Both the position numbers and the translations under genes were made by a program. A model generated the notes under the pieces. That model was given only the letters and a program-made list of their open reading frames with translations. It had not been told where the DNA came from and ran no database searches. From Haliotis rufescens (taxonomy: Eukaryota), in contig NW_025963890.1 of the NCBI RefSeq assembly GCF_023055435.1, positions 59,210,001-59,274,000 of the forward strand: a DNA stretch of 64,000 nucleotides, read 5' to 3'. Positions 18,401 through 48,750 of this stretch are shown piece by piece (the stretch's first letter is position 1; every line of letters starts with the position of its first letter).

Positions 18401-20292
18401 CTATACTTTGTCTGATGAAATTGTGCTGCCTTGTTTGAACACATGTCGAGCAGTAGATCGTGATCTCCTCAGACGTCTCCATGCGTAGTCATAGGACTTT
18501 ATCATGGAGGCTGTTTTGACGTGGTATGATGCTCTTCTGTACACCACCCTCCGCATATAGACACTGCAGTCCTGAGACACAACATTGTTCACCTGAGCTC
18601 TGACAAGTTTGTTTCCAAGAAGCCGTGTTTCCCAATTAACATTTTCGGGAATATAGTGGCAGAACTTGCTGAAAACCACACACCTTCGTCCGTACCGGAT
18701 GGACTGAACACCGATCTCATAGAGAGCTGGCTTATTGTTCTCAGACTTGAAGACTGTCTTCTTTCTGAATCCAGGGTTGGTACCCCGTCTTTTCTCCCAT
18801 TGTGCATCCTGTTTGAGTGGGACGTCAGGGGAGATAACTTTGACCCACGGTGACCAGTCCATGTTTCTCAAGCTGAAGTTGTTCTCAAAGACTTCCTCTC
18901 TTCTCAGAAGAGGTGTCACAAACTTTGTTGATTTCTGGAATAATATAGTGTATTATGAGACTCCTTGACATGATCATAGCTTAACACAATGAAAACAAGA
19001 ATTAAACAGTGTCATCGCGCATTTAAAAACAATTGAGAGAATATTTTACCTTGAACGATTTCTTTCTTGGCTTTCTGATGGATTTAGGTTTGGGCTTTCT
19101 GACTCTTTGAATGGATGTTATTTTCTTTAAGGTGGGAACCTTCACATCTTTCTTAGCGGCACTGATTGTAATCGTTGTCTTTGGTGGAGAAGGGGAGACA
19201 ATTCCATCACGTAGGGATGTAAACATTCCTTCCATGTCTTTGCTGAGGGCACCATCAGCGCAACGGGCTCGAACCTCTTTCTCGTACACCTGATGAGGGC
19301 AAATAATCATTGATGAAAGGAGTTTTATAACAACGAATATCACACGATTAAAATGACAGGCTCTCTACGGATTTTAAAGTGGTGCAGTGATTTCAACTTA
19401 CATGAAGAATCTCTGCCCCCTGTTCCCTGTAGCAGATGGCCATAAGGAAGTCAAAGATGTTTGTAAAGTTTTCCAATTTAAGATGCCGACCTCCTGTCTT
19501 GTTGGAAATGGTTTCGTAGAACGTCGTATTGTCCGTGTCGCACTGAACTCCATAGATTTTCACTCCCTGAAATTAATATTAATATATAGAATAAGTGAAT
19601 AAACATCGTTGTGTCGAATTTACGATTGTTGTCGTGAAGTAAAAGCAAGGTCCCTGCACCTTTCTTATTTATTCATCATTTTCGGTTATGTCGAAGCCCA
19701 GATAACTTTACTCGGATAAATTTACGTAAGCCCCTTAAACGTCGACACAAAGGTGTTTGACCGTGGTGAGTGTTGTATTCTTATCATTTGATATATGTAT
19801 GAAAATGACCACAACCTGGAAATTAATAGAAATTCAACATACCATTTCATCCAGAGTTTGTGTCTCCTTTCTCCAGTCTATTTTTAGTTTATTGGCTTTG
19901 AAATCTGGTTCGTGGGGCTTGTCGTCCCCGACGACGACGAGAACACGGTTAGATCCTGGTGTCCATGACAACTCCTCCCTAACTTGTCGGAGAACAAGCT
20001 CGTAACACTCGCCGTGGTCGTATGTGCCTCCTGTATCTTTAACGTTCATGACGAAGTCGCAGAGTTCTTTGACGTCAGTGGAGAAGTCGATCCACTTTGT
20101 GACATATGTGGATTTGGTACAGTAGTCACCGTGTGCGAAGACGGCGATTCTGACGGCGGGGATGTCAGCCTGGAGCCGCTGTATCATGTCCTGGAGTCGT
20201 CCTCTGACTTCAGCCAGACACTTGCTCATGGAGCCGGTTGTGTCAAAGGAGAAGACAATCTCCGGAAGTCCACCAGGAGGAAGCAAAGCCAT
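18401..20292 (-). CDS. vWA(MIDAS) + basic linker + ET/HRT-type GIY-YIG-like protein, copy 1 (462 aa); CDS exons 20292-19843, 19566-19402, 19289-19050, 18934-18401
   Basis: Four coding exons (450, 165, 240, 534 nt) joined by GT-AG phase-0 introns give one open frame. N-term IVFSFDTTGSM...AHGDY...TGG...ECYE...VVGDDKPH; C-term WSPW...PALYEIGV...SVYMRR...YDYAW. Candidate AATAAA at 17995-18000. Confidence 0.92.
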
Positions 20293-20726
20293 ATTGAATC
20301 TGTTGAAATATTCAAAACAACTGAAGTACATGTATACAAGAAGTTTCACTCTAAAAATTGATAGAAATTTAGAACAATTAACTCTAGCAGTGTAAATAAT
20401 TAAAAAATGTTTTGAAAATCCGATTTTTTTCCTTTTTAATCTTAATTTTTATATTCTCAAAATTTCATAAAAGAATAGATTAACTTTTTAACAAGTCCAT
20501 TAAGAAACAAGAATGTTTCTTAAAAATATTTGCACTGGTAATTTCCGTTATTATGCTATGATCATTTTTTATAGATATAAAAGAATGTGTTTCCATTATT
20601 AGTAAATATTTTTTCTTATCAAATAGATATAAATAGATAAGTTATTTGGCGACGATTTCCTCGATGTTATCAGAGGCGGTACTATATGTATATACACCAT
20701 CACTGTTAACATGTTCCTCTAGTTAC

Positions 20727-20870
20727 CCGTTTTGAATGGTGAGAGTAGTTATATAGTTCTTGTGCTATATTTCCACGCTGCTGTCAGACGTAGTTTATAT
20801 CTATTCAAGTCTTTCAACTGTAGTGTATGCCAGTAGACTGATCTTACTCAGCAGCCCGCCAGCTTTTATA
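20727..20870 (-). promoter_or_regulatory. Copy 1 core promoter and non-coding exon 1
   Basis: TATAAAAG (20870-20863); Inr TCAGTC with A+1 at 20839 (TATA at -31); donor G|GTAACT at 20727/20726; acceptor CAG just before 20299. Confidence 0.8.
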
Positions 20871-21259
20871 CTGGCTGAGAGGCGACCAATGGGAGCTCGC
20901 TGAGACTTGTCTTGGCTGGCATGTTTGGACCTGTTCCGTGGTTGTGTTTAGACGAGCAGGCGATGTTCATGTCTATGCGTTTCAGTAGATGCCTCTGTTT
21001 GGAAAGAAACAAAATCAACTGCTTAATCAGTTGACGATAAATGTAATCGGGGAAATATTAAACATTTTAGACTTAGGGAAACGTGTTGTCATTGAATGTC
21101 TCATGTTCTGAATCGACGCGTGAAACATACATCCAGAAAAGCATGAACATACTCTCACAAATACATTGTTTATATCTATGCTCTTTACACTGTCTGTCGG
21201 AAGATATTTCGGTCGGAATCGGTATATACCCGCAATGTACAGAGTTTGTATATTGTAGA

Positions 21260-21280
21260 TGACGTCATTGCTTCCTTGAA
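21260..21280. promoter_or_regulatory. CRE + STAT/GAS-like element, copy 1
   Basis: TGACGTCA-TTGC-TTCCTTGAA (TTC-N3-GAA), about 420 bp upstream of the predicted TSS. Confidence 0.65.
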
Positions 21281-22734
21281 TGCTTTACTCGCACAACAAA
21301 CAATGGATTATATTCTCAGTAACTACACATAGGAATCTTGTTGATGTTTCTGAGGAATATACATTGTGAATTGACAGTGTGTATGTATGGTACTGGAAAA
21401 TATCTCCCCTTCCAGTTGATTGTCCTTTGATTGTGTAAACCATTATGATCAAACAAAAGGTGTGAATATACATTGTTGTGTTCCATTTGGAGCATACTTT
21501 GTCGTATCAAACTTTCCCTCAGAAGCGTTCTTTTGTTTTATTTTTGAGAATATATGTCGGCCCTAAACGAATTCGCTATTTTGCAAAAAAACATATATTG
21601 GTATCATAACAATGAACACTTTCTCTGAGATATAATTCGATAAGAGTGAGTAAGTTGTATTTAACGCCGCTTTTAACAGTATTCCAGTTATATCACGGCG
21701 TGTCAGCTTAATGTGGGAGGAAAGCCCGAAGTGATTCAGGTCTCAATTCGATAAGAAGGCATTTTTAATTACTTTGTTCACGGATTCACGGACCATTTTT
21801 TAATACACGTGAAACAACATGATGTTGGTGTCTTTGGCAGTTTATTTCAGGAATAGAAAAAGTTGTTTTAAAATTCATTATAGGAAGTGATGTAAATTTT
21901 TGTAAAATCAAGAGCTACTTTCGTATTTTTTCTATTTCACGATACTTTTCAGAAAGCTCTTGTATACAATTTTTCCTTACATGTAATATATATTTACGTT
22001 TATTTTCAGCAACGAGAATACGTTTTAAAAATATATATCAATAAACCAATTTATTTAAAATAACAACATTGATCAGTTTTCATGACATACATAAATAATA
22101 CTCTTGTGACCGGATTTGATATGAAGTATCAGCTGTACTACCGTGGCCAGTTTCCTTGATATATACATCTGGAAAATAATTTAAGTATTACCTGTTTTAT
22201 ATTTTCATATATCCTTAACTTCCATTCATCTTTTGGAAATATCTACACATGACATTGATCTTATTTTTTTTGAATGTTTAAGAAAACACCGATGCCTGCT
22301 ATGCAGTGAGTTCACGAAAACGCCATATCGTAAGATGCAATGAAGCTGATGCAGCTATTGAATGGGAAGTCAAATAGTTATTTCCACACAACCGTTACAA
22401 AACATGCAATTAGATTATCGATTTCAGTTTCTGTATTTCAGTATGGGTCTGTCGCTTTGTAGAATATAAAGGGGTTGCGTACGAACATTAATACCGGATG
22501 CGATTTTGAAACATGGCTCTTCTATATGGAAATATAGTAAGCAGTGTTTTCCATGATATATGTCAGAAACAAACTATTGCCCCGTTTCATAACATTAATC
22601 TAAGCATGAACATTTTCTAGGCCTTTTAAAAGTTATAAAACGTATGATTAATAATAATTATGTTAATTATACATCTTCCGACATGGAAAGGTGATTGTTA
22701 ATTCAGGAAAAGCGTTCACAACTTGAGGAACATA

Positions 22735-22860
22735 TTTCTCAAACACGTTGTTTACCTTCGTTTCTCCTCACACGCGAGTCTAGGACTCGGTTCATTGAGT
22801 AGCGCAGTGTAGTGAAGCGAGTTTAGAAAGAATGTGTGACGTATTTACTTCGCGGATTGT
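22735..22860. promoter_or_regulatory. Conserved distal upstream module, copy 1
   Basis: Near-identical to 17240-17365; ends TGACGTATTTACTTCGCGGAT. Confidence 0.55.
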
Positions 22861-24332
22861 TATGCTCAGTCAGCAGTTCTCCTGTCAATGCAACAACATT
22901 GTACACCGATTTAATTTTCAAATTCAATATATAAGTTGCGTAAAACAGGAATAGCAAATCACAGCAAATTTTGACTGAATTATGCGTGCTAAATGTGCGG
23001 TAAATATACTGTACGAATTGAGATGAATCATGAATATATTTTAAAGAATGTGAATTACGAACATACATAAGATGCAATTTGGTCCTATTATTTATGTCAA
23101 AGAGTTATTTTTCACCTAATGCATGTATTCGGGTATTTACATTTGTAAGGTTATATAACTGCACATCATCTCAAGGTGGGAGGACAGCCCAGTGCATTTC
23201 AGTTCGTGGATGTTAACATGAGTGTTTCATTATATGCTAGTTACAATGTAGGACTTTAAACTCATAAGACGTGTGAATATGAATAAATTCACGTGAATGT
23301 TCATAACTAGATCATATTATATATAATATATGATTTTCTGTTTGTTTCTGGTTACTTTACTTTCCAGCACGTCAGCTTAATGTAGAAAGTCGTTGACGTT
23401 TAGTATTTGGTGAAACACACGAGCATGGTTAATTCACGACCAGACGATGCTGACACGGACCTTAAATTAAAGCGAAAGAAACAGCCTATTTCAATATTCA
23501 TAAGAAAACTGCTGAATAGTACTTGATCAATAATTTCATGGATCTATATTCTGTAGCCGAACATCACTGCACCTTTGAGCTAGAAATGGAGTAAGGTATT
23601 GACATGCGCTTCCAAGTCCCAATTATGTTGTCACTGAAATATCATGCTGGAAATCGTAACAAGAAGAACGGCTCTTCGTTTTGTTCCTTACGATGTCTTT
23701 ACTCAAAGAGATATGGAAGTCGGGGATGGATAAGGGGTTGTGATATGAGTGAATGTTGCTATATGTCCATGTCAGGGCGCATTCAATGTAACTGAATCGA
23801 GACAAGGGAAAGTTGAGGTCTTCAGTGTGAAACAAACGCCACGTTTCGGGGGCAGGAGGACGCACTCTTGTAAGTAGACATTTTCAAAGAAAATAAAGTA
23901 TATGCAAGTCTTATTAGTTTGTTTTATTCATTCCTATTTTGATATTGCACATGTTAACATGAAGTATATATTGTAGGTCAATGAATGATATAAATTTATA
24001 TACATCGTAATATGAACAATCAAATATATACAGCGTTTCATATAACAGGAAAATAACGTTCATCTGTCCATCATTCGGTAGAACACACACATTCTAAGTC
24101 ACGCACTTTAATGACACATCATGCCCTCTCATTCACATAAAATATCTGGCAAGTTGTATGATATGAGATTCGATCTCGATGTTTTTCAAAGTTATATACT
24201 GATGAATTTGGCCTCTTATGTGCCAGTATTTTCCAGAATGTCCTTTGATATATGGCATGTTAAGAAAAAACGTCCATATCTCCGTATCTGTAAGCATATA
24301 TCACAGAATGTGCGTCAATGTTCAGAAACATT

Positions 24333-26222
24333 CTATACTTTGTCTGATGAAATTGTGCTGCCTTGTTTGAACACATGTCGAGCAGTAGATCGTGATCTCC
24401 TCAAACGCCTCCAAGCGTAGTCATAGGACTTTATCATGGAGGCTGTTTTGACGTGGTTTGATGCTCTTCTGTACACCACCCTCCGCACATAGACACTGCA
24501 GTCCTGAGACACAACGTTGTTCACCTGAGCTCTGACAAGTTTGTTTCCAAGAAGCCGTGTTTCCCAATTAACATTATCAGGAATATGGTGGCAGAACTTG
24601 CTGAATACCACACACCTTCGTCCGTACCGGATGGACTGAACACCGATCTCATAGAGAGCTGGCTTATTGTTCTCAGACTTGAAGATTGTCTTCTTTCTGA
24701 ATCCAGGGTTGGCACCCCGTCTTTTCTCCCATTGTGCATCCTGTTTGAGTGGAACGTCAGGGGAGACAACTTTGACCCACGGTGACCAGTCCATGTTTCT
24801 CAAGCTGAAGTTGTTCTCAAAGACTTCCTCTCTTCTCAGAAGTGGTGTCACAAACTTTGTTGATTTCTGGAATAATATAATGTATTATGAGACTCCTTGA
24901 CATGATCATAGCCTAACACAATGAAATCAAGAATTAAACACTGTGATCGCGCATTTAAAAACAATTGAGAGAATATTTTACCTTGAACGATTTCTTTCTT
25001 GGCTTTCTGATGGTTTTAGGTTTGGCCTTTCTGACTCTTTGGATGGATGTTATTTTCGTCAAGGTGGGAACCTTCACATCTTTCTTAGCGGCACTGATTG
25101 TAATCGCTGTCTTCGGTTGAGAAGGGGAGACAATTCCATCACGTAGGGATGTAAACATTCCTTCCATGTCTTTGCTGAGGGCACCATCAGCGCAACGGGC
25201 TCGAACCTCTTTCTCGTACACCTGATGAGGGCAAATAATCATTGATGAAAGGAGTTTTATTATGACGAATATCATAGAATTAAAATGACAGCCGCTCTAC
25301 GGATTTTAAAGTGGTGCAGTTATTTCAACTTACATGAAGAATCTCTGCCCCCTGTTCCCTGTAGCAGATGGCCATAAGGAAGTCAAAGATGTTTGTAAAG
25401 TTTTCCAATTTAAGATGCCGACCTCCTGTCTTGTTGGAAATGGTTTCGTAGAACGTCGCATTGCCCAGGCCGCACTGAACTCCATAGATTTTCACTCCCT
25501 GAAATTAAAATTAATAAATAGAATAAGTGAACGAACATCGTTGTGTGGAATTTACGGTTGTTGTGGCGAAGCAAAAGCAAGGTCCCTGCGCATTCCTTCT
25601 TTATTCATCATTTTCGGTTGTGTCGAACCTCGGATAACGTTACTCGGATACATTTACGTGAGTCCCTTCAACGTCGACTCAAAGGTGGTTGACTGGTGAG
25701 TGTTGTATTCTTATCATTTGATTAATGTAGGAAAATGACCACAACCTGGAAATTAATAGGAATTCAACATACCATTTCATTCAGAGTTTGTGTCTCCTTT
25801 CTCCAGTCTATTTTTAGTTTATTGGCTTTGAAGTCTGGTTCGTGGGGCTTGTCGTCCCCGGCGACGACGAGAACACGGTTAGATCCTGGTGTCCATGACA
25901 ACTCCTCCCCAACTTGTCGGAGAACAAGCTCGTAACACTCGCCGTTGTCGCCACAGCCTCCTGTATCTTCAACGTTCATGACGAAGTCGCAGAGTTCTTT
26001 GACGTCAGTGGAAAAGTCGATCCATTTTGTGACATATGTGGATTTAGTGCAGTAGTCACCGTGTGCGAAGACGGCGATTCTGACGGCGGGGATGTCAGCC
26101 TGGAGCCGCTGTATCATGTCCTGGAGTCGTCCTCTGACTTCAGCAAGACAGCTGCTCATGGAGCCGGTTGTGTCAAAGGAGAAGACAATCTCCGGAAGTC
26201 CACCAGGAGGAAGCAAAGCCAT
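24333..26222 (-). CDS. vWA + GIY-YIG-like protein, copy 2 (462 aa); CDS exons 26222-25773, 25498-25334, 25221-24982, 24866-24333
   Basis: Same exon lengths, phases and splice sites as copy 1; intact frame. Confidence 0.92.
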
Positions 26223-26576
26223 TTTTAACCTGTGGAAAATGAAAACACAACTATATGAAAACATACATACATGAAAGTATATTTGTAATATCGATTCAGT
26301 TTCATTATTAACCATTGCAGGGGAAAGTAATTTAATCAATTGTCTTGTTCATTGTAATGTTATCGTGAAATAAGACATTTGAAATTTTTCCTGTCAGTGT
26401 TTATTGAGAAATCACAATCTTGTTGTCTTTTCTAATTCAAAGTAATTTCCATTAGCATACATAACTATTTGTATTATATTTAGAAAACATGTCTTTACGT
26501 TACGTTACGTAAATTTATCAAATAATGGATCTTTTTCTTTAAAAATAGTTATTGTGGAATGTGTTCCACAAGTTAC

Positions 26577-26728
26577 CTTTTTTGAATGATGACAGTAGAT
26601 ATTTAGTTGTTGTTTGTTATTTCCCCGGTGCTATTAAATGCCGTTTTAGATATACCAACGCTTTCCAACTGCTAGCGAGTGACTTGTGTGTAGACTGATC
26701 TTACTCAGCGAGCCGGTCAGCTTTTATA
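26577..26728 (-). promoter_or_regulatory. Copy 2 core promoter and non-coding exon 1
   Basis: TATAAAAG 26728-26721, Inr TCAGTC (A+1 26696), donor G|GTAACT at 26577. Confidence 0.8.
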
Positions 26729-31152: not shown

Positions 31153-33612
31153 CTATACTTTGTCTGATGAAATTGTAGTGCCTTGTTTGACTACATGTCT
31201 AGCAGTAGAACGTGATCTCCTCAGACGCCTCCAAGCGTAGTCATAGGACTTTATCATGGAAGCTGTTTTGACGTGGTATGATGCTCTTCTGTACACCACC
31301 CTCCGCACATAGACACTGCAGTCCTGAGACACAACGTTGTTCACCTGAGCTCTGACAAGTTTGTTTCCAAGAAGCCGTGTTTCCCAATTAACATTATTGG
31401 GAATATAGTGGGAGAACTTGCTGAATACCACACACCTTCGTCCGTACCGGATGGTCTGAACTCCGATCTCATAGAGAGCTGGCTTATTGTTCTGAGACTT
31501 GAAGATTGTCTTCTTTCTGAATCCAGGGTTGGTACCCCGTCTTTTCTCCCATTGTGCATCCTGTTTGAGTGGGACGTCAGGGGAGATAACTTTGACCCAC
31601 GGTGACCAGTCCATGTTTCTCAAGCTGAAGTTGTTCTCAAAGACTTCCTCTCTTCTCAGAAGTGGTGTCACAAACTTTGTTGGTTTCTGGAATAATTAAA
31701 GTGTATTATGAGACTCCTTGTACTGGTCATAGACTAACACAATGTAAACAAGAATTAAACAGTGTCATCGCGCATTTAAAAACAATTGAGAGAATATTTT
31801 ACCTTGAACGATTTCTTTCTTGGATTTCTGATGGATTTAGGTTTGGGCTTTCTGACTCTTTGGATGGATGTTATTTTCTTTAAGGTGGGAACCTTCACAT
31901 CTTTCTTAGCGGCACTGATTGTAATCGTTGTCTTTGGTGGAGAAGGGGAGACAATTCCATCACGTAGGGATGTAAACATTCCTTCCATGTCTTTGCTGAG
32001 GGCACCATCAGCGCAACGGGCTCGAACCTCTTTCTCGTATACCTGATGAGGGCAAATAATCATTGATGAAAGGAATCTTATAACAACGAATATCACAGAA
32101 TCAAAATGACAGCCGCTCTACGGATTTTAAAGTGGTGCAGTTATTTCAACTTACATGAAGAATCTCTGCCCCCTGTTCCCTGTAGCAGATGGCCATAAGG
32201 AAGTCAAAGATGTTTGTAAAGTTTTCCAATTTAAGATGCCGACCTCCTGTCTTGTAGGAAATGGTTTCGTAGAACGTCGTATTTTCCGTGTCGCACTGAA
32301 CTCCGTAGATTTTTACTCCCTGAAATTAATATTAACATTTATCATTTAACTTAAGCATTTATCCATGACATAAGCTTATGACATAAAAACATGTATGACA
32401 TACCCCATTGACATAAGTATGCAAATTAGATATGCAAATTAGATAACCGGAAGAGTGAGCGGTTTGATTTGAAACTATATATTATAAGTGAAGTTACACC
32501 AGAGATATAATCAGATTACACAGAATCGTTGTTGTTACCGTTATTAAAGTTTCAATTATTCTGCAAAAGTCTGTTCAATTATTTTGTTTAAAATAATCCG
32601 AGGAACTTTTTTTCTCAGGGAATTGTTTATTTTGGTTTACATGGCTATGGAAAACATGTATCACTACGCACGATCTATACGTAAGATTTCGACAAGTTGC
32701 TGATGTTAATGTTTAATGCAATTATTCCTTAATTTGGAAGCAAAAATGATAAATAGAATTCATCACTCGTGTTTTTTAATATGGGAAATATCAACCTCGT
32801 CCCGTTAATCGGTATTTGCCTCGCCAAAGGCTCGGCAAATACCGATTAACTAAGACTCGGTGTGATATTTCCCATATTAAAAAACACTCGTGATGAATGC
32901 TCTATATAGAATAAGTGAATAAACATCATTGTGTCGAAGTTACGGTTGTTGTCGCGAAGTAAAAGCAAAGTCCCTGCACATTTCTTCTTTTTTCATTATT
33001 TTCGGTTGTGTCGAACCCCGGATAACTTTACTCGGATAAATTAACGTAAGCCCCTTCAACGTCGACACAAAGGTGTTTGACCGTGGTGAGTGTTGTGTTC
33101 TTATTATTTGATTTATGTCTGAAAATGACCACAACCTGGAAATTAATAGAAATCGAACAAACCATTTCATTCAGAGTTTGTGTCTCCGTTTTCCAGTCTA
33201 TTTTTAGTTTATTGGCTTTGAAGTATGGTTCGTGGGGCTTGTCGTCTCCGACGACGACGAGAACACGGTTAGATCCTGGGGTCCATGACAACTCTTCCCT
33301 AACTTGTCGGAGAACAAGCTCGTAACACTCGCCGTGGTCGTATGTGCCTCCTGTATCTTCAACGTTCATGACGAAGTCGCAGAGCCCTTTGACGTCAGTG
33401 GAGAAGTCGATCCATTTTGTGACATATGTGGATTTAGTGCAGTAGTCACCGTGTGCGAAGACGGCGATTCTGACGGCAGGGATGTCAGCCTGGAGCCGCT
33501 GTATCATGTCCTGGAGTCGACCTCTGACTTCGGCGAGACAGTCGCACATGGAGGCAGTAGTGTCAAAGGAGAAGACAATCTCCGGAAGTCCACCAGGAGG
33601 AAGCAAAGCCAT
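31153..33612 (-). CDS. vWA + GIY-YIG-like protein, copy 3 (462 aa); CDS exons 33612-33163, 32319-32155, 32042-31803, 31686-31153
   Basis: Intact frame with the same structure; MIDAS DTTASM; first coding-exon donor is GTTTGT; ~570-bp insertion in the following intron. Confidence 0.88.
32336..32903. mobile_element. Intronic non-autonomous element with ~150-bp terminal hairpin
   Basis: Absent from the same intron of copies 1, 2 and 4; inverted repeat CATCACTCGTGTTTTTTAATATGGGAAATATC...GATATTTCCCATATTAAAAAACACTCGTGATG; related hairpin at ~61177-61296. Confidence 0.8.
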
Positions 33613-37949: not shown

Positions 37950-37950
<1 letters not shown>

Positions 37951-38348: not shown

Positions 38349-40189
38349 TTACATCTTGTCAGATGAAATCGTGCAAGTTTGTTTGTTAACATGTCGAGCA
38401 CCTGAGCGTGATCTCAGACGCATCCAAGCGAAGTCATAGGACTTTATTAAAGCGGCTGTTTTAACGTGACTTGAGGCTCTTCTGTACACCACCCTCCGCA
38501 CATGGACACTGCAGTCCTGCGACACAACATTGTTCACCTGAGCTCTGACAATTTTGTTTCCGAGAAGCCGCGTTTCCCAGTTGACATTATGAGGAATATG
38601 GCGACAGAACTTGCTGAATACTACAAACTTTCGTCCGTATCGGGTGGTCTGAACACCGATCTCATAGAGAGCTGGCTTATTGTTCTCAGACTTGAAGATT
38701 GTCTTCTTTCTGAATCCAGGGTTGGCACTCCGTCGCTTCTCCCATTGTGCATCATGTTTGAGTGGAACGTCAGAGGAGATAACCTTGACCCACGGTGACC
38801 AGTCCATGTTTCGTAAGCTGAAGTTGTTCTCAAAGACTTCCTCTCTTCTCAGAAGTGGTGTCACAAACTTTGTTGGTTTCTGGAATAATGTAAGTGTATT
38901 ATGAGACTCCTTGTACTTGTCATATCCTAACACAATGTAAACAAGAACTAAACAGTGTCATCGCGATTTAAAAATATATAAGAGAATATTTTACCTTCAC
39001 TGATTTCTTTCTTGGCTTCCTGGTCGATTTAGGTTTGGCCTTTCTGACTCTTTGGGTGGATGCAGGAGGTTTCTTTAACTTTGGACCCTTCACATCTTTT
39101 TTGGCGGCACCGATTGTAATTGTCGTCGTTGGTGGAGAAGGGGAGACAATTCCATCACGTAGGGATGTAAACATTCCTTCCATGTCTTTACTGATGGCAC
39201 CATTACTGCAACGGGCTCGAACCTCTTTCTCGTACACCTGATAAGGGCAAAATTCATTGATGAAACGAATCTTATAACAACGAAATTCACACAACTAAAA
39301 TGACAGCCGCTCTACAGAAGTTATAATGAGGTTAATTTATTTCAACCTACATGAAGGATATCTTCTCCATGTTCCCTGTAGCAGATGGCCATGAGGAAGT
39401 CAAAGATGTTTGTAAAGTTGTCCAATTTAAGATGCCGACCTCCTGTCTCGTTGGAAATGGTTTCGTAGAACGTCGTATTGTCCGTACCGCACTGAACTCC
39501 GTAGATTTTTATTCCCTGAAATTAACGTTAATAAATAGAAAAAGTGAATAAACACCGTTGTGTCGAATTTACAGCTGTTGTCTCGAAGTAAAATTCTCGG
39601 TCCCTGTACACTCCTTCTCGGGTGTGTCGAACCTCGGATAACTCGAAGCAATTATGTTGGTCTCCTCAACTTCGACACAACAGAGTTGGACTGTAATGGG
39701 AAAGGACACAACACAGAAATTAATAGGAATTCAACATACCATTTTATTCAGAGTTTGCGTCTCCATTCTCCAGTCTATTTTTAGTTTATTGGCTTTGAAG
39801 TTTGGTTCGTGGGGCTTGTCGTCCCCGACGACGACGAGAACACGGTTAGATCCTGGTGTCCATGACAATTCCTCCCCAACTTGTCGGAGAACAAGCTCGT
39901 AACACTCGCCGCTGTCGTAATCACCTCCTGTATCTTCAACGTTCATGACGAAGTCGCAGAGCTCTTTGACGTCAGTGGAAAAGTCGATCCACTTTGTGAC
40001 ATATGTGGATTTGGTACAGTAGTCACCGTGTGCGAAGACGGCGATTCTGATGGCGGGGATGTCAGCCTGCAGCCGCTGTATCATGTCCTGGAGCCGTCCT
40101 CTGACTTCGGCGAGACAGTCGCTCATGGAGCCGGTTGTGTCAAAGGAGAAGACAATCTCCGGAAGTCCACCAGGGGGAAGTAAAGCCAT
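38349..40189 (-). CDS. vWA + GIY-YIG-like protein, copy 4 (462 aa, most divergent intact copy); CDS exons 40189-39740, 39515-39351, 39237-38995, 38879-38349
   Basis: Exons of 450, 165, 243 and 531 nt, phase 0, GT-AG; intact frame; C-terminal YDFAW. Confidence 0.92.
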
Positions 40190-40353
40190 GTTGAATCTGC
40201 TTAACAGGCCGAAAGCTTGCATATTATTATTTCAATAATCAAGTATTTCGAGTACATTTATCTTAGGCAACGCTGTTTTCGGAATGCATTGTACAGTTAT
40301 GTTATAAATTATCCCGTTTAATTGATCCTATGATTTGTATAATAACGAATTAC

Positions 40354-40434
40354 CTTTTATATTGATATGTTGTACACACAGGGTAGTTTATGTCAGCTGA
40401 CTGATCTTACTCAGCGAGTACCTTAGCTTTTATA
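40354..40434 (-). promoter_or_regulatory. Copy 4 core promoter and short non-coding exon 1
   Basis: TATAAAAG 40434-40427, Inr TCAGTC (A+1 40402), donor AAG|GTAATT at 40354. Confidence 0.78.
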
Positions 40435-40834
40435 CTGACTGAGAGGCGATAGCGACGAGCCCGCGTTGGCTTGTTTCGGTCTGCAGGTTCAGACTCGCTC
40501 TGCGGTGGACTTTTGGATATTTGACGACATGTTCATGTCTCTGTGTTTTTGCCCGTGTTTCAATGGAGGCTTCTGTTAAAAACAAAGGAGCTCAAAGTGA
40601 TTAATCAGTTTACGTATAACGTAGTCGGGGAGTTACTGCACCTATTTTATTTCAGGAAAAGTGGTCTTTTTGATTCGTGCTTGTTCAGAACTGAGGTATG
40701 AAACACATTCAGAAACGTTTGAGCATACACCTCAATACGTTGTTGATAGCAATGCTCCTTTCACTGTACTTTGGTAGATATTTAAGCCGTATATAGTTTG
40801 AGTCTGCAATGTGAGGAGTTTGAATAACTGGGCA

Positions 40835-40855
40835 TGAGGTCATTTCTTCGCGGAA
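40835..40855. promoter_or_regulatory. CRE-like + STAT/GAS-like element, copy 4
   Basis: TGAGGTCA-TTTC-TTCGCGGAA, about 430 bp upstream of the TSS. Confidence 0.6.
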
Positions 40856-41749
40856 TATCTTATCAAGCAAAATATTAATGTGACCCCAAATGAAAATAAA
40901 AAATATATTTTGAAGCCTCTGTTACATTTTTATGTTTCTTCATTCATATTTCGTCTGTGTTGAGGGAATTTCATCATACGTTACAATTATATTGTTATCA
41001 TTAAATACAGCATTCGCGTTATGATTATTTCAAGTCCGTCTATCTGTCGGTGTTTCACCTCAGGCCCCTGTTTGAAGTTCCTGTGTGGCATGAGTCCGTG
41101 TTCCATGAAGGCATGAACATACTTCAACTTTGGCCTCTGTTTCAGAGATGATGGTTCAAACATGCTTTCAAATATATTGTCATCAATCAATCAATCAAGT
41201 TTATGTCGTAATTCAGGCCACATAGTACAGTTGTAAGATAAATAACATTTTAGGTCACATGTCCAGATCATATGCCATCTCAATATGATATATCAGCACT
41301 ACTACACTGACCAGTTCCATGTGATATATTTGTTCAAAGGTTATTATTCCACATTGATCATTTCACTTTTGAAATAAATTGAAGCCCGCATCAAACACAT
41401 CACCACCGAAATTTCTATTTCTTCCATTTGTAGCCACCACCAAAAATGGGTGAATACTCAGTTTATTTTCCCCCCGAGAGTGTCTCAGTAACATTATCTG
41501 ACCAGTGGTCTAACCATGTATAAGCAGTATATTTCTGTTTATCTTACGCATATGGGTCTAAGCTACAAGAGGAAGACAGTTCATAAAAAGGTATTTTGCA
41601 ATAGGTGTATACATTTTGCAGAAACACGCAGAGCATAAGAAATAAAGCAGGATCAATATTAATCATGATACCGTGTATACTGTACCGTGATTTATATACA
41701 TGTGAATGAGACTGTTCAGTTAGGATAAGCGTTCTTGGCTTCTGAGACG

Positions 41750-41870
41750 TATCTCTCAAACACTCTTTGTTTACATTAAGTTCCCCACGCGTGTGTATAG
41801 GACTCGGTATCGCAGTGCAGTGTGACAAGTTTGGCAAGAATGTGTGACGTAATTACTTCGCGGAATGTGA
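41750..41870. promoter_or_regulatory. Conserved distal upstream module, copy 4
   Basis: TAGGACTCGG...GAATGTGTGACGTAATTACTTCGCGGAA. Confidence 0.55.
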
Positions 41871-42292
41871 TCCAGTAATCAGTTGTGCCCGGTTGGTCAC
41901 ATGTCCACAGATAACGGGTGAAAGTCCACTTACTACATACCGATATGGTCTCTGGCTTACTTCCAAAGCCATTCTTATATCAATAGAAATAACAGATCTT
42001 ACAGCAAATATTGACCTGAATAGATAAATGAGATTAATGGTGGCGACTTGTGTCCGAATATCATTTGCCTTTTTCACATACAAATAATTTTATGTTTAAA
42101 TCAGTGGTGTTGAAATTTAAATACCAATCATCAGATAATACCCCCAAATACATTTCATCACCATTTGTGCATAATACAAAATACTTACATAAGAATATGT
42201 AGGATTAGTATTGTAGCATTTCGTATGAAATTCATATAATTAACCTGAGAATATCCTTCAATGCACACCACTCCCTACAGTCATGATAATAT

Positions 42293-42548
42293 CCCGGCTA
42301 GAATAGGTCTTCAGCAACCCATGCTTGCCGTAAAAGGCGACTATGCTTGTCGTAAGAGACGACTAACGGGATCAGGTGGTAATTAAGACTCGCTGACTTG
42401 GTTGATGCATGTCATGGTATCCCAATTGCGAGGAACGATGCTCATGATGTCAATCACTGGATTGGCTGGTCCAGACTCGATTATTTACAGCCCGCCGTCA
42501 TATAGCTGGAATATTGCTGAATGCGGCGTTAAACAACAAACAAACAAT
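42293..42548 (+). mobile_element. SINE-like repeat family A
   Basis: Family A consensus. Confidence 0.85.
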
Positions 42549-42580
42549 GAAATCAATCATGGTTTTAAAGATACACCGTG

Positions 42581-42687
42581 GGCCCCGTTCCTCAAAGCGA
42601 TTTTAGCGCTGAGTTGATCGTAAGTCCCATACTTTAACATAGGGTTACGATCATCGTAGCGCTAAGATCGCTTTGAGGAACGGGGCC
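42581..42687. mobile_element. Palindromic MITE, PIF/Harbinger-like
   Basis: TIRs GGCCCCGTTCCTCAAAGCGAT / ATCGCTTTGAGGAACGGGGCC; nearly the whole element is a hairpin. Confidence 0.8.
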
Positions 42688-43102
42688 CTGGACATTAGTA
42701 GGCGTAATATGCTTGATGAACGTGTTAATTTTATTATGCGTGTTCATTTTCACAAATACACATGGATAATATTGCCAACGTGGATGTGAATATTGTGGAA
42801 AGGCTGATAATAAGAAAGCTTCCTCGATATCATTTATTCAGTATGTTTGTTCATTTTCAAGTAGTAAATGTACTGTGATATAGCAGTTTGACACTTGCGC
42901 CCGTGCAACAAGCGGGGCTGCTTTTACATGAAGATGCCATCTCCGTGTGGAAATACACGATCGCTAAGAGGGTTTATTGTTTACAAGTTCTCCGGTCTAT
43001 ATACAAGAATTGTTATACATGCATATCTACAACTGTATGCACACATGTGTCAATTCGGGGTCAATTTTTCTCTCTCAATGTAATTAATCACACACAAAGT
43101 AT

Positions 43103-43876
43103 ATACGTAAATGTATGTGACAATGAAGAAATAGATGTGTGGACACACACAGCAAATATCACAAACGTGAAGATAGATGACAATGAAGATTTAGGTGTCT
43201 GGACACACACAGCAAATACCACACACGTGAAGATAGATGACAATGAAGATTTAGGTGTCTGGACACACACAGCAAATATCATACACGTGAAGATAGATGA
43301 CAATGAAGATTTAGATGTGTGGACACACACAGCAAATATCACAAACGTGAAGATAGATGACAATGAAGAAATAAATGTGTGGACACACACAGCAAATATC
43401 ACAAACGTGAAGATAGATGACAATGAAGATTTAGATGTCTGGACACACACAGCAAATATCACAAACGTGAAGATAGATGACAATGAAGATTTAGGTGTCT
43501 GGACACACACAGCAAATATCATACACGTGAAGATAGATGACAATGAAGAAATAGATGTGTGGACACACACAGCAAATATCACAAACGTGAAGATAGATGA
43601 CAATGAAGATTTAGATGTCTGGACACACACAGCAAATATCACAAACGTGAAGATAGATGACAATGAAGATTTAGGTGTCTGGACACACACAGCAAATATC
43701 ATACACGTGAAGATAGATGACAATGAAGAAATAGATGTGTGGACACACACAGCAAATATCACAAACGTGAAGATAGATGACAATGAAGATTTAGATGTCT
43801 GGACACACACAGCAAATAGCATACACGTGAAGATAGGTGACAATGAAGATTTAGATGTCTGGACACACACAGCAAA
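43103..43876. repeat. 60-bp minisatellite, about 13 copies, no indels
   Basis: GGACACACACAGCAAATATCACAAACGTGAAGATAGATGACAATGAAGATTTAGATGTCT in perfect register. Confidence 0.97.
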
Positions 43877-44569
43877 GTTTTTGAAGAAGATTTACTGTTT
43901 ATATCAAAAAGGGCTTTTACGATTCATTTCTATATTCTGTAAAGAGAATCTTTTTGTGGCATTGGGGGCCCAGTCGTCTAAGACGCCACGATTCGCTGTG
44001 CAGAGTTCCGTCCCAGGGCACACCAGACACCTATGATTACTGGTTCGAATCCCGGTTCGCCCCTGTTATGTTTCTAGGTATGTATCTTAAATTAGCGATA
44101 TTATAGCCAAAAAATGAACGGTTAAAGCGCTTAGTCAGCGCTCAATGAATACTTCTACATGGTTTAAAGCTTTAAAAGATTACTTTTTTTGCGCCTAATA
44201 CACAACTGGTGATAGGTTTCTTGGACATTTATTTACAATATTTCACTTGACCCAAGTTTGATTCAAGTCATCACCGGTTTGTTAGTCTGCTAACTTAACT
44301 TTAATGATATATGTATTCATGACATTAGTTTTATTTAAGCTATATCCGTATGCGTTTATCAATATAGTACCAACGGAGTTGTGATGGATCTGTGTGTATG
44401 CGGGAGTGTGTGAGTAATTGGTCAGTATATTTGTATCAATTTTGTTTAGGCATATGGTAGGGTGTTTCAGCGTCGTGTTGTTTTTATATCTATATCAGGC
44501 CTGCCTATGAAAAAAAGTCGAATTAGGGATTCCGACTAAATTATGAGCATGTATTTATTAATCATGTTC

Positions 44570-44823
44570 ATTTGTTGTTTAACGCCGCACTCAGCTATAT
44601 TCCAGCTATATGACGGCGGTCTAAATATTAGAGTCTGAACCAGACAATCCAGTGATTGATATCATGAACATCGATCTACACAATTGTGATACGATGACAC
44701 GCATCAACTAAGTCAACAAGTCTGACATCCATTCCTGTTAGTCACCTCTTACGACAAGCATAGTCGCCTTTTAAGGCAAGCATGGGTTGCTGAAGATCTA
44801 TTCGGCCCGGATCTTCACGGGTC
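44570..44823 (-). mobile_element. SINE-like repeat family A
   Basis: Reverse complement of the family A consensus. Confidence 0.85.
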
Positions 44824-45834
44824 TATTTATGAATCACCATCAAATAGTGATGATACCAGGTGTTCATGGAAAGGTGAACTTATCCTGCCCCAAGGCTGAT
44901 ACACATCACAAACACATGCAAAGGAAAGTCAAGTGTTCACTTGTAAACCTAGCGACCAGGCTAAATAGAGAGTGAAAGCATGAACAGAAAACGATGTACA
45001 CTGCAACGCAGCGAAATTATAGGGCCTAGTCACCCGATGCTTCACGCCATGAGATCACAAACATCTTGATGTTGAGCTGTGACATGATCATGGTCAATAT
45101 TCAAATCATGTATCGCTATGTATTGTTATACAATGATTGGAACTGTATTTTTATTTTTATACTGATTCTGTTGAGATTCAGTAGACGTTCCTTGTATTGT
45201 ATTTGGACATTCTATTAATGTACTTAATGGTGAGTAAGTTATTATATTTAGATGCTCGAATTATCTATAAACTTCCGGAATAGCGTGGATGGATGTCAAG
45301 CGTTATAGAAACGTGTGGAATATTCTGTGATTTTTCTAGTGACACTGGACTGGTAAAGCACTGTTGGGAAAGTGTGGGAAGCTGGTTGGACTATATGAGT
45401 GGATCGGGCGCGGCCCTGTCTCATCTCACATTACATCAAGACCAGCTTTTGTGTGAAGATTCCATTTCACCCTGGAATTCTAGCCTGGTCTATCTCGGGA
45501 GCTTGACCACTGTTGCAGCGAGGTGATTATTATTCTTGTCATTGTCCTTTCCACTGCTCTCGCATATTATACTGACTACTATTGTACTACTACTCTCTTG
45601 TGTACTGCCATTTTAATTGCTGTGCAGTAATTTGCAGTTATTTGTAAACCTAGTAAATTTTGTGATTTTGTTGATTGTATACCAGATTTCTGAGTTAACA
45701 TATTGTTTCAATTTGGGAATCGCCACGTAATAATATCAATTCTACATTATGATAAGGTAAATACTTTCCATTAGACACTTTTTTGTTTTTTTTACATTTT
45801 CTTTTTAATAATTCTCACACGATCTGTACAGTTC

Positions 45835-48197
45835 TTATATTTCCTCTGACGACATTATGCTGCCTTGTCTGTACACATATCGGGCGCGAGGGCGTGATCT
45901 CAGACGCTCCCAAGCATAGTCAAAGGACTTCATCATAGAAAGAGACTTATTGTGACTTGAAGCTCTTCTGTACACCACCCTCCACACAAAGACACTTTCC
46001 CAAGTAACATTCCCGGGGATATGGTGTCAAACGTGTTGAATACTACGACCCTTCGTCTGTATCGTTTGGCTTGAACAGCTATTTCATAGAGAGCTAGTTT
46101 ATTGTTCTCAGAAATGAACATCCGTGTTTCTTTAGCAAAAGATGTTCTCAAAGACTTGCTGGAGTATCATGCAGGAAGACGAGGCACCATAGGTCTCCAT
46201 GATCCCCAGCAGGCTTGAACAGGTTTTTCATAGAGAGCTAGTTTATTGTTCTCAGAAATGACATCCGTGTTTCTTTAGCAAAAGATGTTCTGAAAGACTT
46301 GCTGGGGTATCATGCAGGAAGACGAGGTACCATAGGTTTCTATGATCCCCAGCAGGCTTGAACAGCTATTTCATAGAGAGCTGTTTTATTGTTCTCAGAA
46401 ATGAACATCCGTGTTTCTTTAGCAAAAGATGTTCTGAAAGACTTGCTGGGGTATCATGCAGGAAGACGAGGTACCATAGGTTTCTATGATCCCCAGCAGG
46501 CTTGAACAGCTATTTCATAGAGAGCTGTTTTATTGTTCTCAGAAATGAACATCCGTGTTTCTTTAGCAAAAGATGTTCTGAAAGACTTGCTGGAGTATCA
46601 TGCAGGAAGACGAAGTACTGTAGGTCCCCATGATCCCCAGCAGGTGGCCTAGCTTTGGTTACTTGTGGCCTACAACCCGTGTTTTAAACTGTATTAATGT
46701 TATTGTTATGTTAGTTTGATCAAATGTGTTTTAAAACAAAATATACATTTGCATTCATAACTCAATTGTGAATACGTATATTAACTTGGTCTCGTCGCTA
46801 TATGGCTGAAATAATGCCGATGCGACGAAAATTTAAACTCACTCACTCAAAGACTTCCGCTCTTCTCAGAAGAGGTGCCACAAACCTTTCTGGTTTCAGG
46901 AATTACAAACATATAACGAGAGTACAGATCTCCCAATGAACACCACACGTGACATTGCGAAAAGATAGCTATTTAATTTATGATTTATGAAACTTCCCTT
47001 CAATGATTTGGTTCTGGGCATCCTGTTTGATCTACGTTTAGACTTTTGGACTCCTCGGTTGGATGCTGTCTTCTTTAAGGTGGGAACCTTCACCCTCATC
47101 TTGGCAGGCTTAGCAACAGCAACATTCTTCCCATCCTTCCCGACTCCAGGAATGGATGTCGTCTTCTTAAAGATAGGTGGCTTATCACCTTTCTCAGCCG
47201 CACTTGCTGGCGTCTTCTTCTTTGGCGAGGAAGGGGAGGCTACTCCATCCAGTAGAGACGTAAACATGACTCGAACCGCTTTTTCGTAATCCTGATAAAT
47301 AAAACAAATCTTACAGACAAGATAAACAAAATATTATTTTTGAAATCAAACATTGGAAATGACAATCCATGGATCAATTAACCCTGGACACATGTATTGA
47401 GATAACAATATAGTGGGTAATCGATAACTCAAATACGACAGGGGAGGCCAGATATGTCAAATTACACGAAGGGTATCTGCCCCGTGTTCCCTGTAGCAGA
47501 TGGCCATGATGAAGTCAAAGATATTTGTATAGTTGTCCAATTTAAGATGTCGTCCTCCTGTCTCGATGCAAATTGTCTGGTAGAACGTCGTAGCCCAGTC
47601 GTCACACTCAACTCCATAAATTGTTATTCCCTGGATATAAAATCAGTGAATATCATGAGTACCTATATCTCTTCATATGATTTATGAAGAGGATTATAAA
47701 ATGTTGCAGCCTTCTAAGTTGATCGAAATTACAGGGTAAAATTCAACTAACCATTTTATGGAGAGTTTTTGTCTCCTCTCCAGTCTATATTTCGTTTATT
47801 GGCTCTGAAGTTTCGTTCGTGGGGGTAGTCGTCTTCGACGACGACAAGACCTCGGTTGGATCTCTGTGTCAAAGACAACTCCTAACAAACCTTGTCTGAA
47901 AACAAGCTCGTAACATTCGGCCCCGTCATCAGTGCCCCCCTGTACCTTTCACGTTCATGACGAAGTCCCAGAGCTTTTTGACGTCAGTGGAGAAGTCGAT
48001 TTTGTGACATATGTGGATTTGGTACAGTATTCACCGTGTGCGAAGACGGCGATTCTGATGGCGGGGATGTCAGCCTGGAGCCGCTGTATCATGTCCTGGA
48101 GCCGACCTCTGACTTCGGTCAGACAGTCGTTCATTGTCCCGGCTGTGTCAAAGGAAAACACAATCTCCATAAGTCCACTAGGAGGGACTAAGGCCAT
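45835..48197 (-). pseudogene. vWA + GIY-YIG-like gene, copy 5 (pseudogene)
   Basis: ATG at 48197; MIDAS degraded to DTAGTM; 4-nt deletion near 48000 causing a frameshift and stop at 47955; deletions in later exons; last exon split by an insertion (~46158-46845); TATA decayed to TATGAACG (~48470). Confidence 0.9.
46069..46643. repeat. ~144-bp tandem repeat x4 spanning an exon/insertion junction of the pseudogene
   Basis: GCTTGAACAGCTATTTCATAGAGAGCT...CATGATCCCCAGCAG repeated four times. Confidence 0.92.
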
Positions 48198-48649
48198 GTT
48201 GAATCTGAGGAACAATTTATTCCCACTAGGTTTAAAAATATTTAAATATGTTTAAGAAAACTGAAATTAGTTCCACCAACTTACAAAAAGTAAACATTCT
48301 TTCAATGATCCTAATATTGTTTATTAACGACGCATCTTATGTTAGAAAGAATACCGTTCATTAATATTTATCTCCAAAGTATACTAGATGCCCCTGTTGT
48401 ATTGTACTACAGTCTCTCAACTGCTCTAGACCTTAGAGATCTTATAAATATACCCAGCGAGAGGGTAAGCGTTCATACTGGCTGAGAGGCGATCAGGCGA
48501 GCTCGCTGAGATTTGTCCTGGTCGACTTGCGTTGCGTTTAACTTTGGACATCTGTCGATGTTCATATAGCCTAATATCTCCATCTTCGTGTCCGTATTTC
48601 AAATAAGGCTTCTGTTCGATCTCCGTTCATGACATTGATCAGTGTTTAC

Positions 48650-48750
48650 TGAACGACAAGAAGCGCGGTTAGATCCCTAGGGCCTCTGTCCATGACCAGC
48701 GATCTCCAGCTCGTCAGGAAACAAGTTCGTAACATTTGCCCTCATCATGA
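48650..48750 (-). pseudogene. Degenerate fragment of a further vWA exon
   Basis: GACAAGAAGCGCGGTTAGATCC...GTCCATGAC...AACAAGTTCGTAACATTTGCC matches the CYELV...SWTPGSNRVLV segment of the paralogues. Confidence 0.7.

Follow-up and report, generated by a model that had tools for sequence, protein, structure and literature searches.

What do the tandem gene copies at positions 18401-48750 of a 64,000-nucleotide stretch of Haliotis rufescens DNA (the window) encode, and what might their products do in the cell? The initial annotation read this region as four intact 462-residue paralogues accompanied by a pseudogene and a further fragment, and our gene models and tblastn alignments bear this out, with accurate coordinates (Table 1). 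Each of the genes A-D has 462 codons in four exons separated by phase-0 GT-AG introns, all lie on the minus strand, and pairwise protein identity ranges from 87 to 95% (94.6% between genes A and B). Intron 1 of gene C is longer than that of A and B, and gene D has an exon 3 that is one codon longer and an exon 4 that is one codon shorter. The Haliotis rufescens LOC124141935 product (P0155) matches the C-terminal exon of gene D. The fifth copy is a pseudogene: a frameshift and two in-frame stops disrupt exon 1, exon 2 shares 69% identity with that of gene A, the linker exon carries an insertion, and exon 4 combines stops and a 21-codon deletion with the triplication of a short segment. The 6-7 kb repeat unit showed no transposon hallmarks. 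A fibrinogen-related gene is located 6 kb from the array.

Table 1. Positions of the array genes and associated features in the window (exons in order of transcription).
Feature	Position	Strand	Exons or parts	Basis
Gene A, 462 aa	18401-20292	minus	20292-19843 (vWA part 1); 19566-19402 (vWA part 2); 19289-19050 (helical extension and basic linker); 18934-18401 (GIY-YIG-fold domain and stop)	Sequence reading and splice sites; all three introns skipped in contigs of four studies
Gene B, 462 aa	24333-26222	minus	26222-25773; 25498-25334; 25221-24982; 24866-24333	
Gene C, 462 aa	31153-33612	minus	33612-33163; 32319-32155; 32042-31803; 31686-31153	
Gene D, 462 aa	38349-40189	minus	40189-39740; 39515-39351; 39237-38995; 38879-38349	
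Fifth copy, pseudogene	45838-48197	minus	Triplicated exon 4 segment: 46570-46499; 46426-46355; within 46304-45978	tblastn alignments
Isolated vWA exon 1 fragment, 23 codons, one stop	48681-48749	minus		tblastn, weak (E 0.14), colinear with family motif
Part of gene B 5' non-coding exon	26577-26599	minus		Contig connects it to the coding-exon start
GAS-like (TTCNNNGAA) and full CRE (TGACGTCA) pair, gene A	21258-21282	minus		Regex scan, consensus matches only
Putative gene-conversion or recombination tract	17947-18982	minus	3' flank, exon 4 and last 48 nt of intron 3 (about 1 kb)	blastn against G000:C112:59.04-59.10 Mb

The N-terminal module (residues 1-233) consists of an acidic vWA domain (pI about 5) and a helical extension. 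The Pfam VWA profile (PF00092, cut-off 23.8) recognises exon 1 of gene A with 32.9 bits, and VWA or VWA_4 profiles match 17-20 of 40 homologues. The MIDAS residues (D17-x-T19-x-S21, T87 and D123) show complete or at least 90% conservation across 108 homologues and are all present in genes A-D, confirming the metal-ion-dependent adhesion site noted previously; in gene C, residue 20, which adjoins this site, is Ala and not Gly. In the full-length AF2 model most 10-residue blocks of residues 10-233 reach pLDDT 84-97 (two lie at 77-81), and the modelled alpha/beta Rossmann-like fold retrieves integrin beta I-like domains in Foldseek (E 1e-9, probability 1.00). A disordered Lys/Pro-rich linker of about 55 residues follows, with a net charge of +18 and a pI of 12. 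Hydropathy profiles of the A-D products show no hydrophobic segment (the 19-residue Kyte-Doolittle mean peaks at 0.77-0.91), and there is no room for a signal peptide because the vWA beta-1 strand begins at residue 10, in agreement with the intracellular protein with a basic linker that had been proposed.

In assembled contigs of four studies, precisely the three introns of our gene models are missing (CT..AC ends on the plus strand), with intron depth near zero; these contigs are transcriptome-like in behaviour, no run being recorded as RNA. All exons are linked in them, joining the two domains in spliced transcripts, and the loose end of one contig (run X2) at 20292 places uniquely within the 5' non-coding exon of gene B. 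The array genes belong to the host, are expressed and encode an intracellular protein with two modules. As regards the suggested STAT/CRE-type promoters, consensus matches to GAS-like and full CRE motifs are paired ~975-988 nt upstream of the gene A ATG and correspondingly upstream of B and C (about 880-990 nt across copies), whereas gene D has the GAS-like site and lacks the full CRE.

The window holds only one of two arrays. Seven further apparently intact genes form a sister array 122-170 kb before the window start. Within 205 kb there are 11 C-terminal exons. Around exon 4 of gene A, the putative conversion tract is 87-93% identical to type-II paralogues, compared to just 72-80% for the remaining exons; synonymous divergence (dS) from copy A is likewise 0.05-0.11 in exon 4, 0.5-0.6 in exon 1 and about 1.0 in exon 2. 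Judged from these alignments, the tract appears to keep the C-terminal exon uniform between two diverged vWA subtypes. Variation between paralogues is enriched in the MIDAS-face loops (pN/pS 0.71 vs 0.18 elsewhere; Fisher p = 0.004, with loop boundaries that were set after the variable sites had been seen), and dN/dS is 0.2-0.4 and below 1 everywhere, indicating purifying selection. Together with the pseudogene and fragment, the array copies and this loop excess bear out the earlier proposal of birth-and-death expansion with variable ligand-face loops. The two arrays, pseudogenisation, diverged vWA subtypes and apparently converted C-terminal exon fit, without proving, a role in conflict or defence.

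The C-terminal module comprises about 170 residues with a net charge of +20, and its AF2 model is of high quality (pLDDT 93.4, pTM 0.89). The modelled elements (strands 356-363 and 370-378, helices 387-392 and 395-406, strand 410-417 and helix 421-431) reproduce the beta-beta-alpha-alpha-beta-alpha order of the GIY-YIG superfamily, a three-stranded sheet flanked by helices. In a VIA-align comparison with 48,161 chains, GIY-YIG nucleases make up seven of the top eight structures, led by T4 EndoII (Z 7.1), Hpy188I (4.7), PD-T4-3 (4.2) and the UvrC N-domain (4.1), with I-TevI (3.8), Eco29kI (3.3) and AtGRXS16-N (3.3) at lower ranks. Foldseek likewise returned T4 EndoII as best match, as expected from the GIY-YIG-like domain initially annotated. 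At the sequence level, PF19239 (GIY_YIG_domain), seeded from a protein cluster of nucleocytoplasmic large DNA viruses, matches 34 of 75 relatives of the module (E up to 0.1; the lowest is 4e-8). Close and distant relatives alike are among the five that exceed its cut-off of 21.4 bits (P0003, 26.2; P0151, 26.7; P0164, 26.7; P0072, 28.6; P0016, 28.8 bits), and the alignment is colinear, with profile positions 2-50 at the beta-1 region and 104-161 from beta-3 through the YDYAW motif. Exon 4 of the window copies itself falls below every Pfam threshold, PF19239 included, PF01541 gave no match in this domain at E up to 1, and hhalign against canonical GIY-YIG copies of the same genome returned a probability of 0.3, using a canonical profile low in diversity. 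The best viral structure match in BFVD was M1I060 (E 1.7e-4, probability 1.00). The C-terminal module is thus predicted to have the GIY-YIG nuclease fold and to belong, at family level, to PF19239.

The canonical active-site positions, which we assigned by secondary-structure register and not by superposition, are poorly conserved. The GIY Tyr (Y358) is retained in 81% of homologues and replaced by Phe in 14%; the YIG position (374) is Tyr in 50% and Phe in 44%, including genes A-D; and the helix-1 Arg (R390) occurs in 45%. The homologue alignment contains no conserved helix-3 Glu, nor any conserved acidic residue at 418-433, and no conserved Asn downstream of the YDYAW motif, so that the canonical catalytic set (Tyr, Tyr, Arg, Glu, Asn) is not retained. 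To our knowledge, the helix-3 Glu is a metal ligand in every characterised GIY-YIG enzyme. Given this poor conservation, the label "nuclease" is not to be assumed, and a nucleic-acid-binding or non-canonical module is more likely than a standard nuclease. Fully conserved are E359, R414, R298, R448, Y434 and Y436, the first four of which might make up an active site of a non-canonical kind. Binding of nucleic acid in a non-canonical or non-catalytic role seems at least as likely as nuclease activity.

These observations are best rationalised by an expressed two-module protein in which the vWA module would bind a protein ligand through its MIDAS face, a face that varies between paralogues, and the basic linker and GIY-YIG-fold module would bind nucleic acid, such that the MIDAS ligand is tethered or recruited to DNA or RNA. 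We consider this explanation about evenly balanced between being right and wrong. A second possibility, which we regard as rather doubtful, is that the GIY-YIG domain is an active non-canonical nuclease or nickase controlled or targeted by the vWA ligand (e.g., a viral or damage-associated protein) and acts as an innate immune or genome-defence effector. The nearest structures, T4 EndoII and PD-T4-3, the latter an anti-phage enzyme, point in this direction, as do the six absolutely conserved residues, the tandem expansion with its pseudogene, diversified MIDAS face and homogenised effector exon, and the fibrinogen-related neighbour. A plant ET2 domain, related by name, is moreover reported to nick DNA (PMC6585611). 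Against an active nuclease stand the missing helix-3 Glu, the Phe substitutions at both Tyr positions, the helix-1 Arg present in fewer than half of the homologues, the lack of a sequence-level tie to PF01541 and dN/dS values below 1.

Homologues of the C-terminal domain fall into 153 clusters at 50% identity, and the search for the fusion returned 953 matches in the full-length range, hundreds of predicted proteins that come from gastropods and bivalves as well as a chiton, a brachiopod and a nemertean. All are named uncharacterized or hypothetical, save for automatic names such as "VWFA domain-containing" and "Ariadne-like RING finger protein R811". On this sampling the predicted vWA and GIY-YIG-fold family is lophotrochozoan-wide, with two tandem arrays in abalone. 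We found no description of this architecture in the literature searched, consistent with the initial view that no characterised animal protein is known to possess it. Many molluscs have one to several copies of constant length and about 45% identity. This distribution, the purifying selection and the transcripts in transcriptome-like assemblies of four independent studies could be expected of a conserved lophotrochozoan housekeeping factor acting in chromatin, repair or RNPs, the abalone arrays then being a neutral amplification kept uniform by gene conversion and having no role in conflict. We judge this unlikely, as two sharply diverged vWA subtypes occur next to each other (dS about 1 in exon 2), the loops are under roughly 4-fold weaker constraint than the remainder of the vWA domain, and a pseudogene and a fragment are present. 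Recent capture of a viral or selfish gene cassette that serves no function in the host, suggested by vWA sequences sharing 45-51% identity with ORFs of viral contigs 100-500 kb long, by the giant-virus seed of PF19239 and by viral best matches in BFVD, is largely refuted by the four exons with canonical introns, the spliced transcripts, the intact ORFs under purifying selection, the different C-terminal domain of the viral proteins, the repeat unit free of transposon hallmarks and a tree in which all lophotrochozoan sequences form one clade, with one branch of 100% support between it and every viral sequence.

Returning to the tethering protein that we favour, the family is a plausible, as yet unproven candidate for a defence or chromatin factor directed at nucleic acid. 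Lacking adaptive immunity, molluscs depend on expanded families of innate genes, and we know of few intracellular nucleic-acid-directed factors in these animals. A more far-reaching scenario, improbable when taken as a whole, is that the proteins are lophotrochozoan-wide cytosolic or nuclear immune sensor-effectors: the diversifying MIDAS face of a giant-virus-type vWA domain would recognise foreign or damage-associated proteins, recognition would direct or release a non-canonical GIY-YIG nuclease or nickase so that it attacks viral or aberrant nucleic acid, and the effector exon would have been gene-converted to uniformity across sensor subtypes, both modules sharing ancestry with large-DNA-virus proteins. 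The abalone locus presents a clear evolutionary signature, with two sensor subtypes, one common and apparently converted effector exon and a variable ligand face, and the likeness of the vWA module to proteins on large viral contigs raises the question of whether large DNA viruses and animals have exchanged genes. Were the C-terminal domain inactive, it would represent another case of a nuclease fold recruited for binding.

Among known systems, T4 endonuclease II (PDB 2wsh) resembles the C-terminal module over 112 aligned residues (rmsd 3.2), including the N-terminal extension before the core. The abalone domain differs from this and other GIY-YIG nucleases in its low sequence identity (6-12%), its lack of a conserved helix-3 Glu or PF01541 match and the only partial conservation of the two Tyr and the Arg. 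The best structure matches on the viral PF19239 side (M1I060 and others) are short uncharacterised proteins, whereas the abalone domain is fused behind a vWA domain and basic linker in intron-bearing animal genes. A possible motif likeness to plant ET/HRT proteins (LYE..GV, DYAW) was brought forward in the initial annotation. ET proteins contain a divergent GIY-YIG domain able to nick DNA, the ET2 domain complementing the nicking function of UvrC, and are defined by C-terminal Cys-rich zinc-/DNA-binding ET repeats and described as plant-specific (PMC6585611). They have no vWA domain, and the abalone proteins, which are not from a plant, contain no Cys-rich ET repeats anywhere and end 5-10 residues past the GIY-YIG-fold domain.

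The N-terminal module resembles vWA proteins of large DNA viruses (IMG/VR contigs of 100-500 kb, four labelled GVMAG), with 45-51% identity (E about 1e-67) across the vWA domain and helical extension (residues 11-231) and the common motifs FDTTGSM and AHGDYC. Unlike the abalone proteins, they are about 360 residues long, are encoded without introns and terminate in an unrelated domain of about 125 residues that has no Pfam match, some with an extra N-terminal RING. The name R811 on some mollusc homologues derives from a mimivirus protein. Copines, Ku70/80, Rpn10 and TFIIH p44 have no detectable specific sequence relationship to the abalone family and carry other partner domains, yet in each of them a cytosolic or nuclear vWA domain serves as a protein-interaction module joined to a second module, and in Ku the vWA domain is coupled to DNA binding.

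The minus strand of the window carries four head-to-tail genes (A to D), each 462 codons long and split into four exons by three phase-0 GT-AG introns. A broken fifth copy and a 23-codon vWA fragment complete the set of four intact 462-residue paralogues, pseudogene and fragment that the initial annotation had described. Exons 1 and 2 encode a vWA domain, exon 3 a helical extension and basic linker, and exon 4 the C-terminal domain. The proteins encoded by A to D are 87-95% identical, with pairwise dS of 0.06-0.10 within A/B/C and 0.22-0.26 for D versus each of the others. In the broken copy, exon 4 is damaged as well, by stops, a 21-codon deletion and the triplication of a short segment. The window genes were searched exon by exon, and full-length work used the database protein P0155, the Haliotis rufescens LOC124141935 product, which the C-terminal exon of gene D matches; joined A to D translations served solely for alignment, dN/dS and pI. 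Between gene D and the broken copy lies a minisatellite with approximately 17 copies of a 60-nt unit (central copies 90-95% identical, end ones 65-78%) that contains long spurious ORFs on both strands. An exon encoding a fibrinogen C-terminal domain (FReD; PF00147, E 2e-40), from a gene of the typical mollusc immune-lectin type, is found about 6 kb from the array. The window also holds a transposase remnant with a weak DDE_3 match (E 0.002) and an ORF without a Pfam match.

Location of the vWA genes, their neighbours and related loci (plain positions refer to the window; G000, the window's genome; C112, its chromosome)
Feature	Position	Strand	Remark
Gene A	18401-20292	-	
Gene B	24333-26222	-	
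Gene C	31153-33612	-	
Gene D	38349-40189	-	
5' non-coding exon of gene B	26577-26599	-	contig loose end maps there
Broken fifth copy	48197-45838	-	exon 1: two in-frame stops and a frameshift
vWA fragment	48749-48681	-	23 codons with a stop
Segments skipped by contigs, gene A	18935-19049; 19290-19401; 19567-19842		
Covered segment in intron 1, gene A	19578-19719		
Tract shared between subtypes	17947-18982		3' flank, exon 4 and 48 nt of intron 3
Minisatellite	42981-44000		
FReD exon	54188-54892	-	
Transposase remnant	13488-14075	+	
ORF	63392-63853	-	
Second array (L013-L018)	G000:C112:59042655-59088049		122-170 kb before the window's start
Divergent C-terminal-domain exons (five)	G000:C556:45645424-45645915; C390:905603-925920; C135:826816-827382		

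Four different studies supplied small contig sets that look like transcriptomes, although none of the runs is on record as RNA. Across gene A, contig depth is approximately zero over introns 2 and 3 and most of intron 1, and contigs in every run skip exactly three segments whose CT..AC ends on the plus strand are GT..AG for a minus-strand gene. A 387-nt contig covers exons 2 and 1 and runs on into exon 3; the exon joins are shown pair by pair, and among the contigs listed none covers the whole gene. With all three introns skipped, the transcripts join the vWA and C-terminal domains, as expected if the two belong to one protein, and the family proteins are real, expressed and uncharacterised. 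Two of the four sets also show appreciable depth over a segment of intron 1, with loose ends on either side; this segment is likely to be repetitive or to belong to another transcript rather than to the gene model. Motifs of the proposed STAT/CRE-type promoters are present in part: genes A, B and C have a GAS-like site and, 12-13 nt away, a full CRE, both 880-990 nt upstream of the ATG, and gene D has the GAS-like site without the full CRE. All are putative sites, matching consensus sequences in the vicinity of a 5' non-coding exon.

The N-terminal module is a vWA domain with a metal-ion-dependent adhesion site (MIDAS), as first annotated: exon 1 matches Pfam VWA with 32.9 bits (cut-off 23.8), and the MIDAS residues D17, T19, S21, T87 and D123, like the motifs AHGDY and CYE, show little or no variation across 108 aligned full-length homologues. 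AlphaFold2 (AF2) predicts a vWA fold with two extra helices, ending at residue 233, which matches integrin beta I-like domains (E 1e-9). No signal peptide or hydrophobic segment was found in the family protein, in line with the absence of secretion and transmembrane signals noted initially. Residues 237-290 are predicted to be disordered (pLDDT below 50 at 237-270 and 278-280, and low to about 290), and the linker has a net charge of +18 over the scored stretch 237-292. So basic a linker would suit a protein of the nucleus or nucleolus.

The C-terminal domain is itself very basic (net charge +20, pI 10.5). Exon 4 alone gave no Pfam match, no PDB sequence match and no usable match in the ESM Atlas; PDB sequence searches with exon 4, the family profile or full-length P0155 returned nothing meaningful, and NCBIfam, PADLOC and PHROGs scans yielded nothing except one weak PHROG vWA match. 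Scanned in full with HMMER, 1.8 billion representative proteins yielded 153 clusters (61 with E <1e-10), in most of which the domain is C-terminal, usually following a vWA domain, and a profile word-index search with the domain alignment gave only six matches and no new taxa. The AF2 model of exon 4, built with 75 family sequences (pLDDT 93.4, pTM 0.89), was aligned exhaustively against 48,161 chains. T4 EndoII ranked first (Z 7.1 over 112 residues), followed by Hpy188I, PD-T4-3, the UvrC N-terminal domain, I-TevI and Eco29kI, with AtGRXS16-N at rank 8. A Z score of 7 is by itself unremarkable; what is remarkable for this predicted structure is that seven of the eight best matches are GIY-YIG enzymes. 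Foldseek independently placed EndoII at the top, and Pfam PF19239 ("GIY_YIG_domain"), built from a giant-virus protein cluster (supplement of PMC8715426), matches 34 of the 75 family members, several above the cut-off and colinearly. The GIY-YIG fold that had been proposed for the domain is therefore supported. The best predicted viral structure matches are short uncharacterised proteins (M1I060, E 1.7e-4). In the window's genome (e.g., L002-L012), a repeat family that has a CxxC between GIY and YIG accounts for at least 44 canonical PF01541 GIY-YIG copies; it is probably a mobile element and is unrelated in sequence to the vWA family. Hhalign of the C-terminal family profile against these copies gave a probability of 0.3, which has no bearing on homology, the profile of the copies being of low diversity.

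The canonical GIY-YIG positions, placed by secondary-structure order, are poorly kept among the 108 homologues. The GIY tyrosine (358) is Tyr in 81% and Phe in 14%, the YIG tyrosine (374) is Tyr in 50% and Phe in 44%, including A, B, C and D, and the helix-1 arginine (390) is Arg in 45%. Residues 418-433 contain no conserved acidic residue that could stand for the helix-3 metal-binding glutamate, and no conserved Asn follows the YDYAW motif. Fixed instead are R298, E299, W313, W316, E359, R414, Y434, Y436, W438 and R448. An active, non-canonical nuclease, a reading to which the structural neighbours lend themselves, is therefore rather unlikely; given the poor retention of the canonical set and the very basic domain, we rate nucleic-acid binding without canonical catalysis as likelier and give it about an even chance. 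An inducible sensor-effector role, as the initial annotation suggested, or a nuclease function is putative.

Full-length relatives (953 matches, E <=1e-5) occur in molluscs (gastropods, bivalves and a chiton), in a brachiopod and in a nemertean. Their database names are almost always "uncharacterized", "hypothetical" or "VWFA domain-containing"; a few were assigned automatically, e.g., "Ariadne-like RING finger protein R811". The window's genome has at least 16 copies of the C-terminal exon, 11 of them within a 205-kb stretch of the window's chromosome. Five more divergent exons of this domain are found elsewhere in the genome and are likely members of longer subfamilies, e.g., the 842-residue P0117/P0264. 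A second array contains seven apparently intact four-exon paralogues: two with a type I vWA, as in A to D, four with a diverged type II vWA and one more divergent. Relative to gene A, the four type II genes have dS of 0.5-0.6 in exon 1, approximately 1.0 in exon 2 and 0.05-0.11 in exon 4. A discrete 1.03-kb tract is 87-93% identical between the subtypes, against 72-80% for the other exons, and the introns cannot be aligned. This pattern suggests that the C-terminal exon has undergone gene conversion or recombination between genes with diverged vWA modules, beyond purifying selection. Among the six type I genes, variation is enriched in the ligand-face loops, as the initial annotation had claimed: with loop boundaries drawn post hoc, 12 of the 27 variable sites lie in the predicted MIDAS-face loops, which make up 43 of 205 positions (Fisher p = 0.004), and pN/pS there is 0.71 versus 0.18 elsewhere. 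No vWA region in these genes has pN/pS >1.

Intronless ORFs of about 360 residues on 100-500 kb IMG/VR viral contigs (L019-L098; e.g., L019:2977-4062) match residues 11-231 of the abalone protein with 45-51% identity (E ~1e-67). Four of these contigs carry giant-virus MAG labels, the viral class being a label only. Flanks inspected on two contigs contain ordinary compact ORFs, e.g., adenylosuccinate synthetase. The C-terminal domain of the viral proteins is conserved in the four ORFs inspected and contains GRGFYE and FLYEV; in L045 and L056 the protein is extended by about 200 residues at the N-terminus, with a RING finger in L045. Neither hhalign nor an HMM search related the abalone C-terminal family to these viral tails. 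In a FastTree phylogeny of vWA modules, one branch with 100% support splits animals from viruses; the tree, being unrooted, does not tell which way a transfer went. A selfish or viral cassette, which the vWA similarity might suggest, was rejected in view of the four-exon genes with canonical introns, the spliced transcripts, the purifying selection and the different viral C-terminal domain.

The literature searched holds no description of a vWA plus PF19239-type architecture and no characterised animal protein of this kind, as the initial annotation had maintained. A mussel "GIY-YIG domain containing" transcript (PMC6215123), whose accession is unstated, is discussed there with canonical GIY-YIG endonucleases and gives no sign of belonging to the abalone family. 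The structural observation and the fold assignment made at the outset are right, and the proteins of the array join two known domain kinds, vWA and PF19239-type. The resemblance to plant ET proteins suggested initially is putative. Those proteins are defined by ET repeats, which the abalone family lacks, and the viral vWA proteins end in a different, Pfam-less domain of about 125 residues, whereas the abalone proteins end in the GIY-YIG-fold domain.
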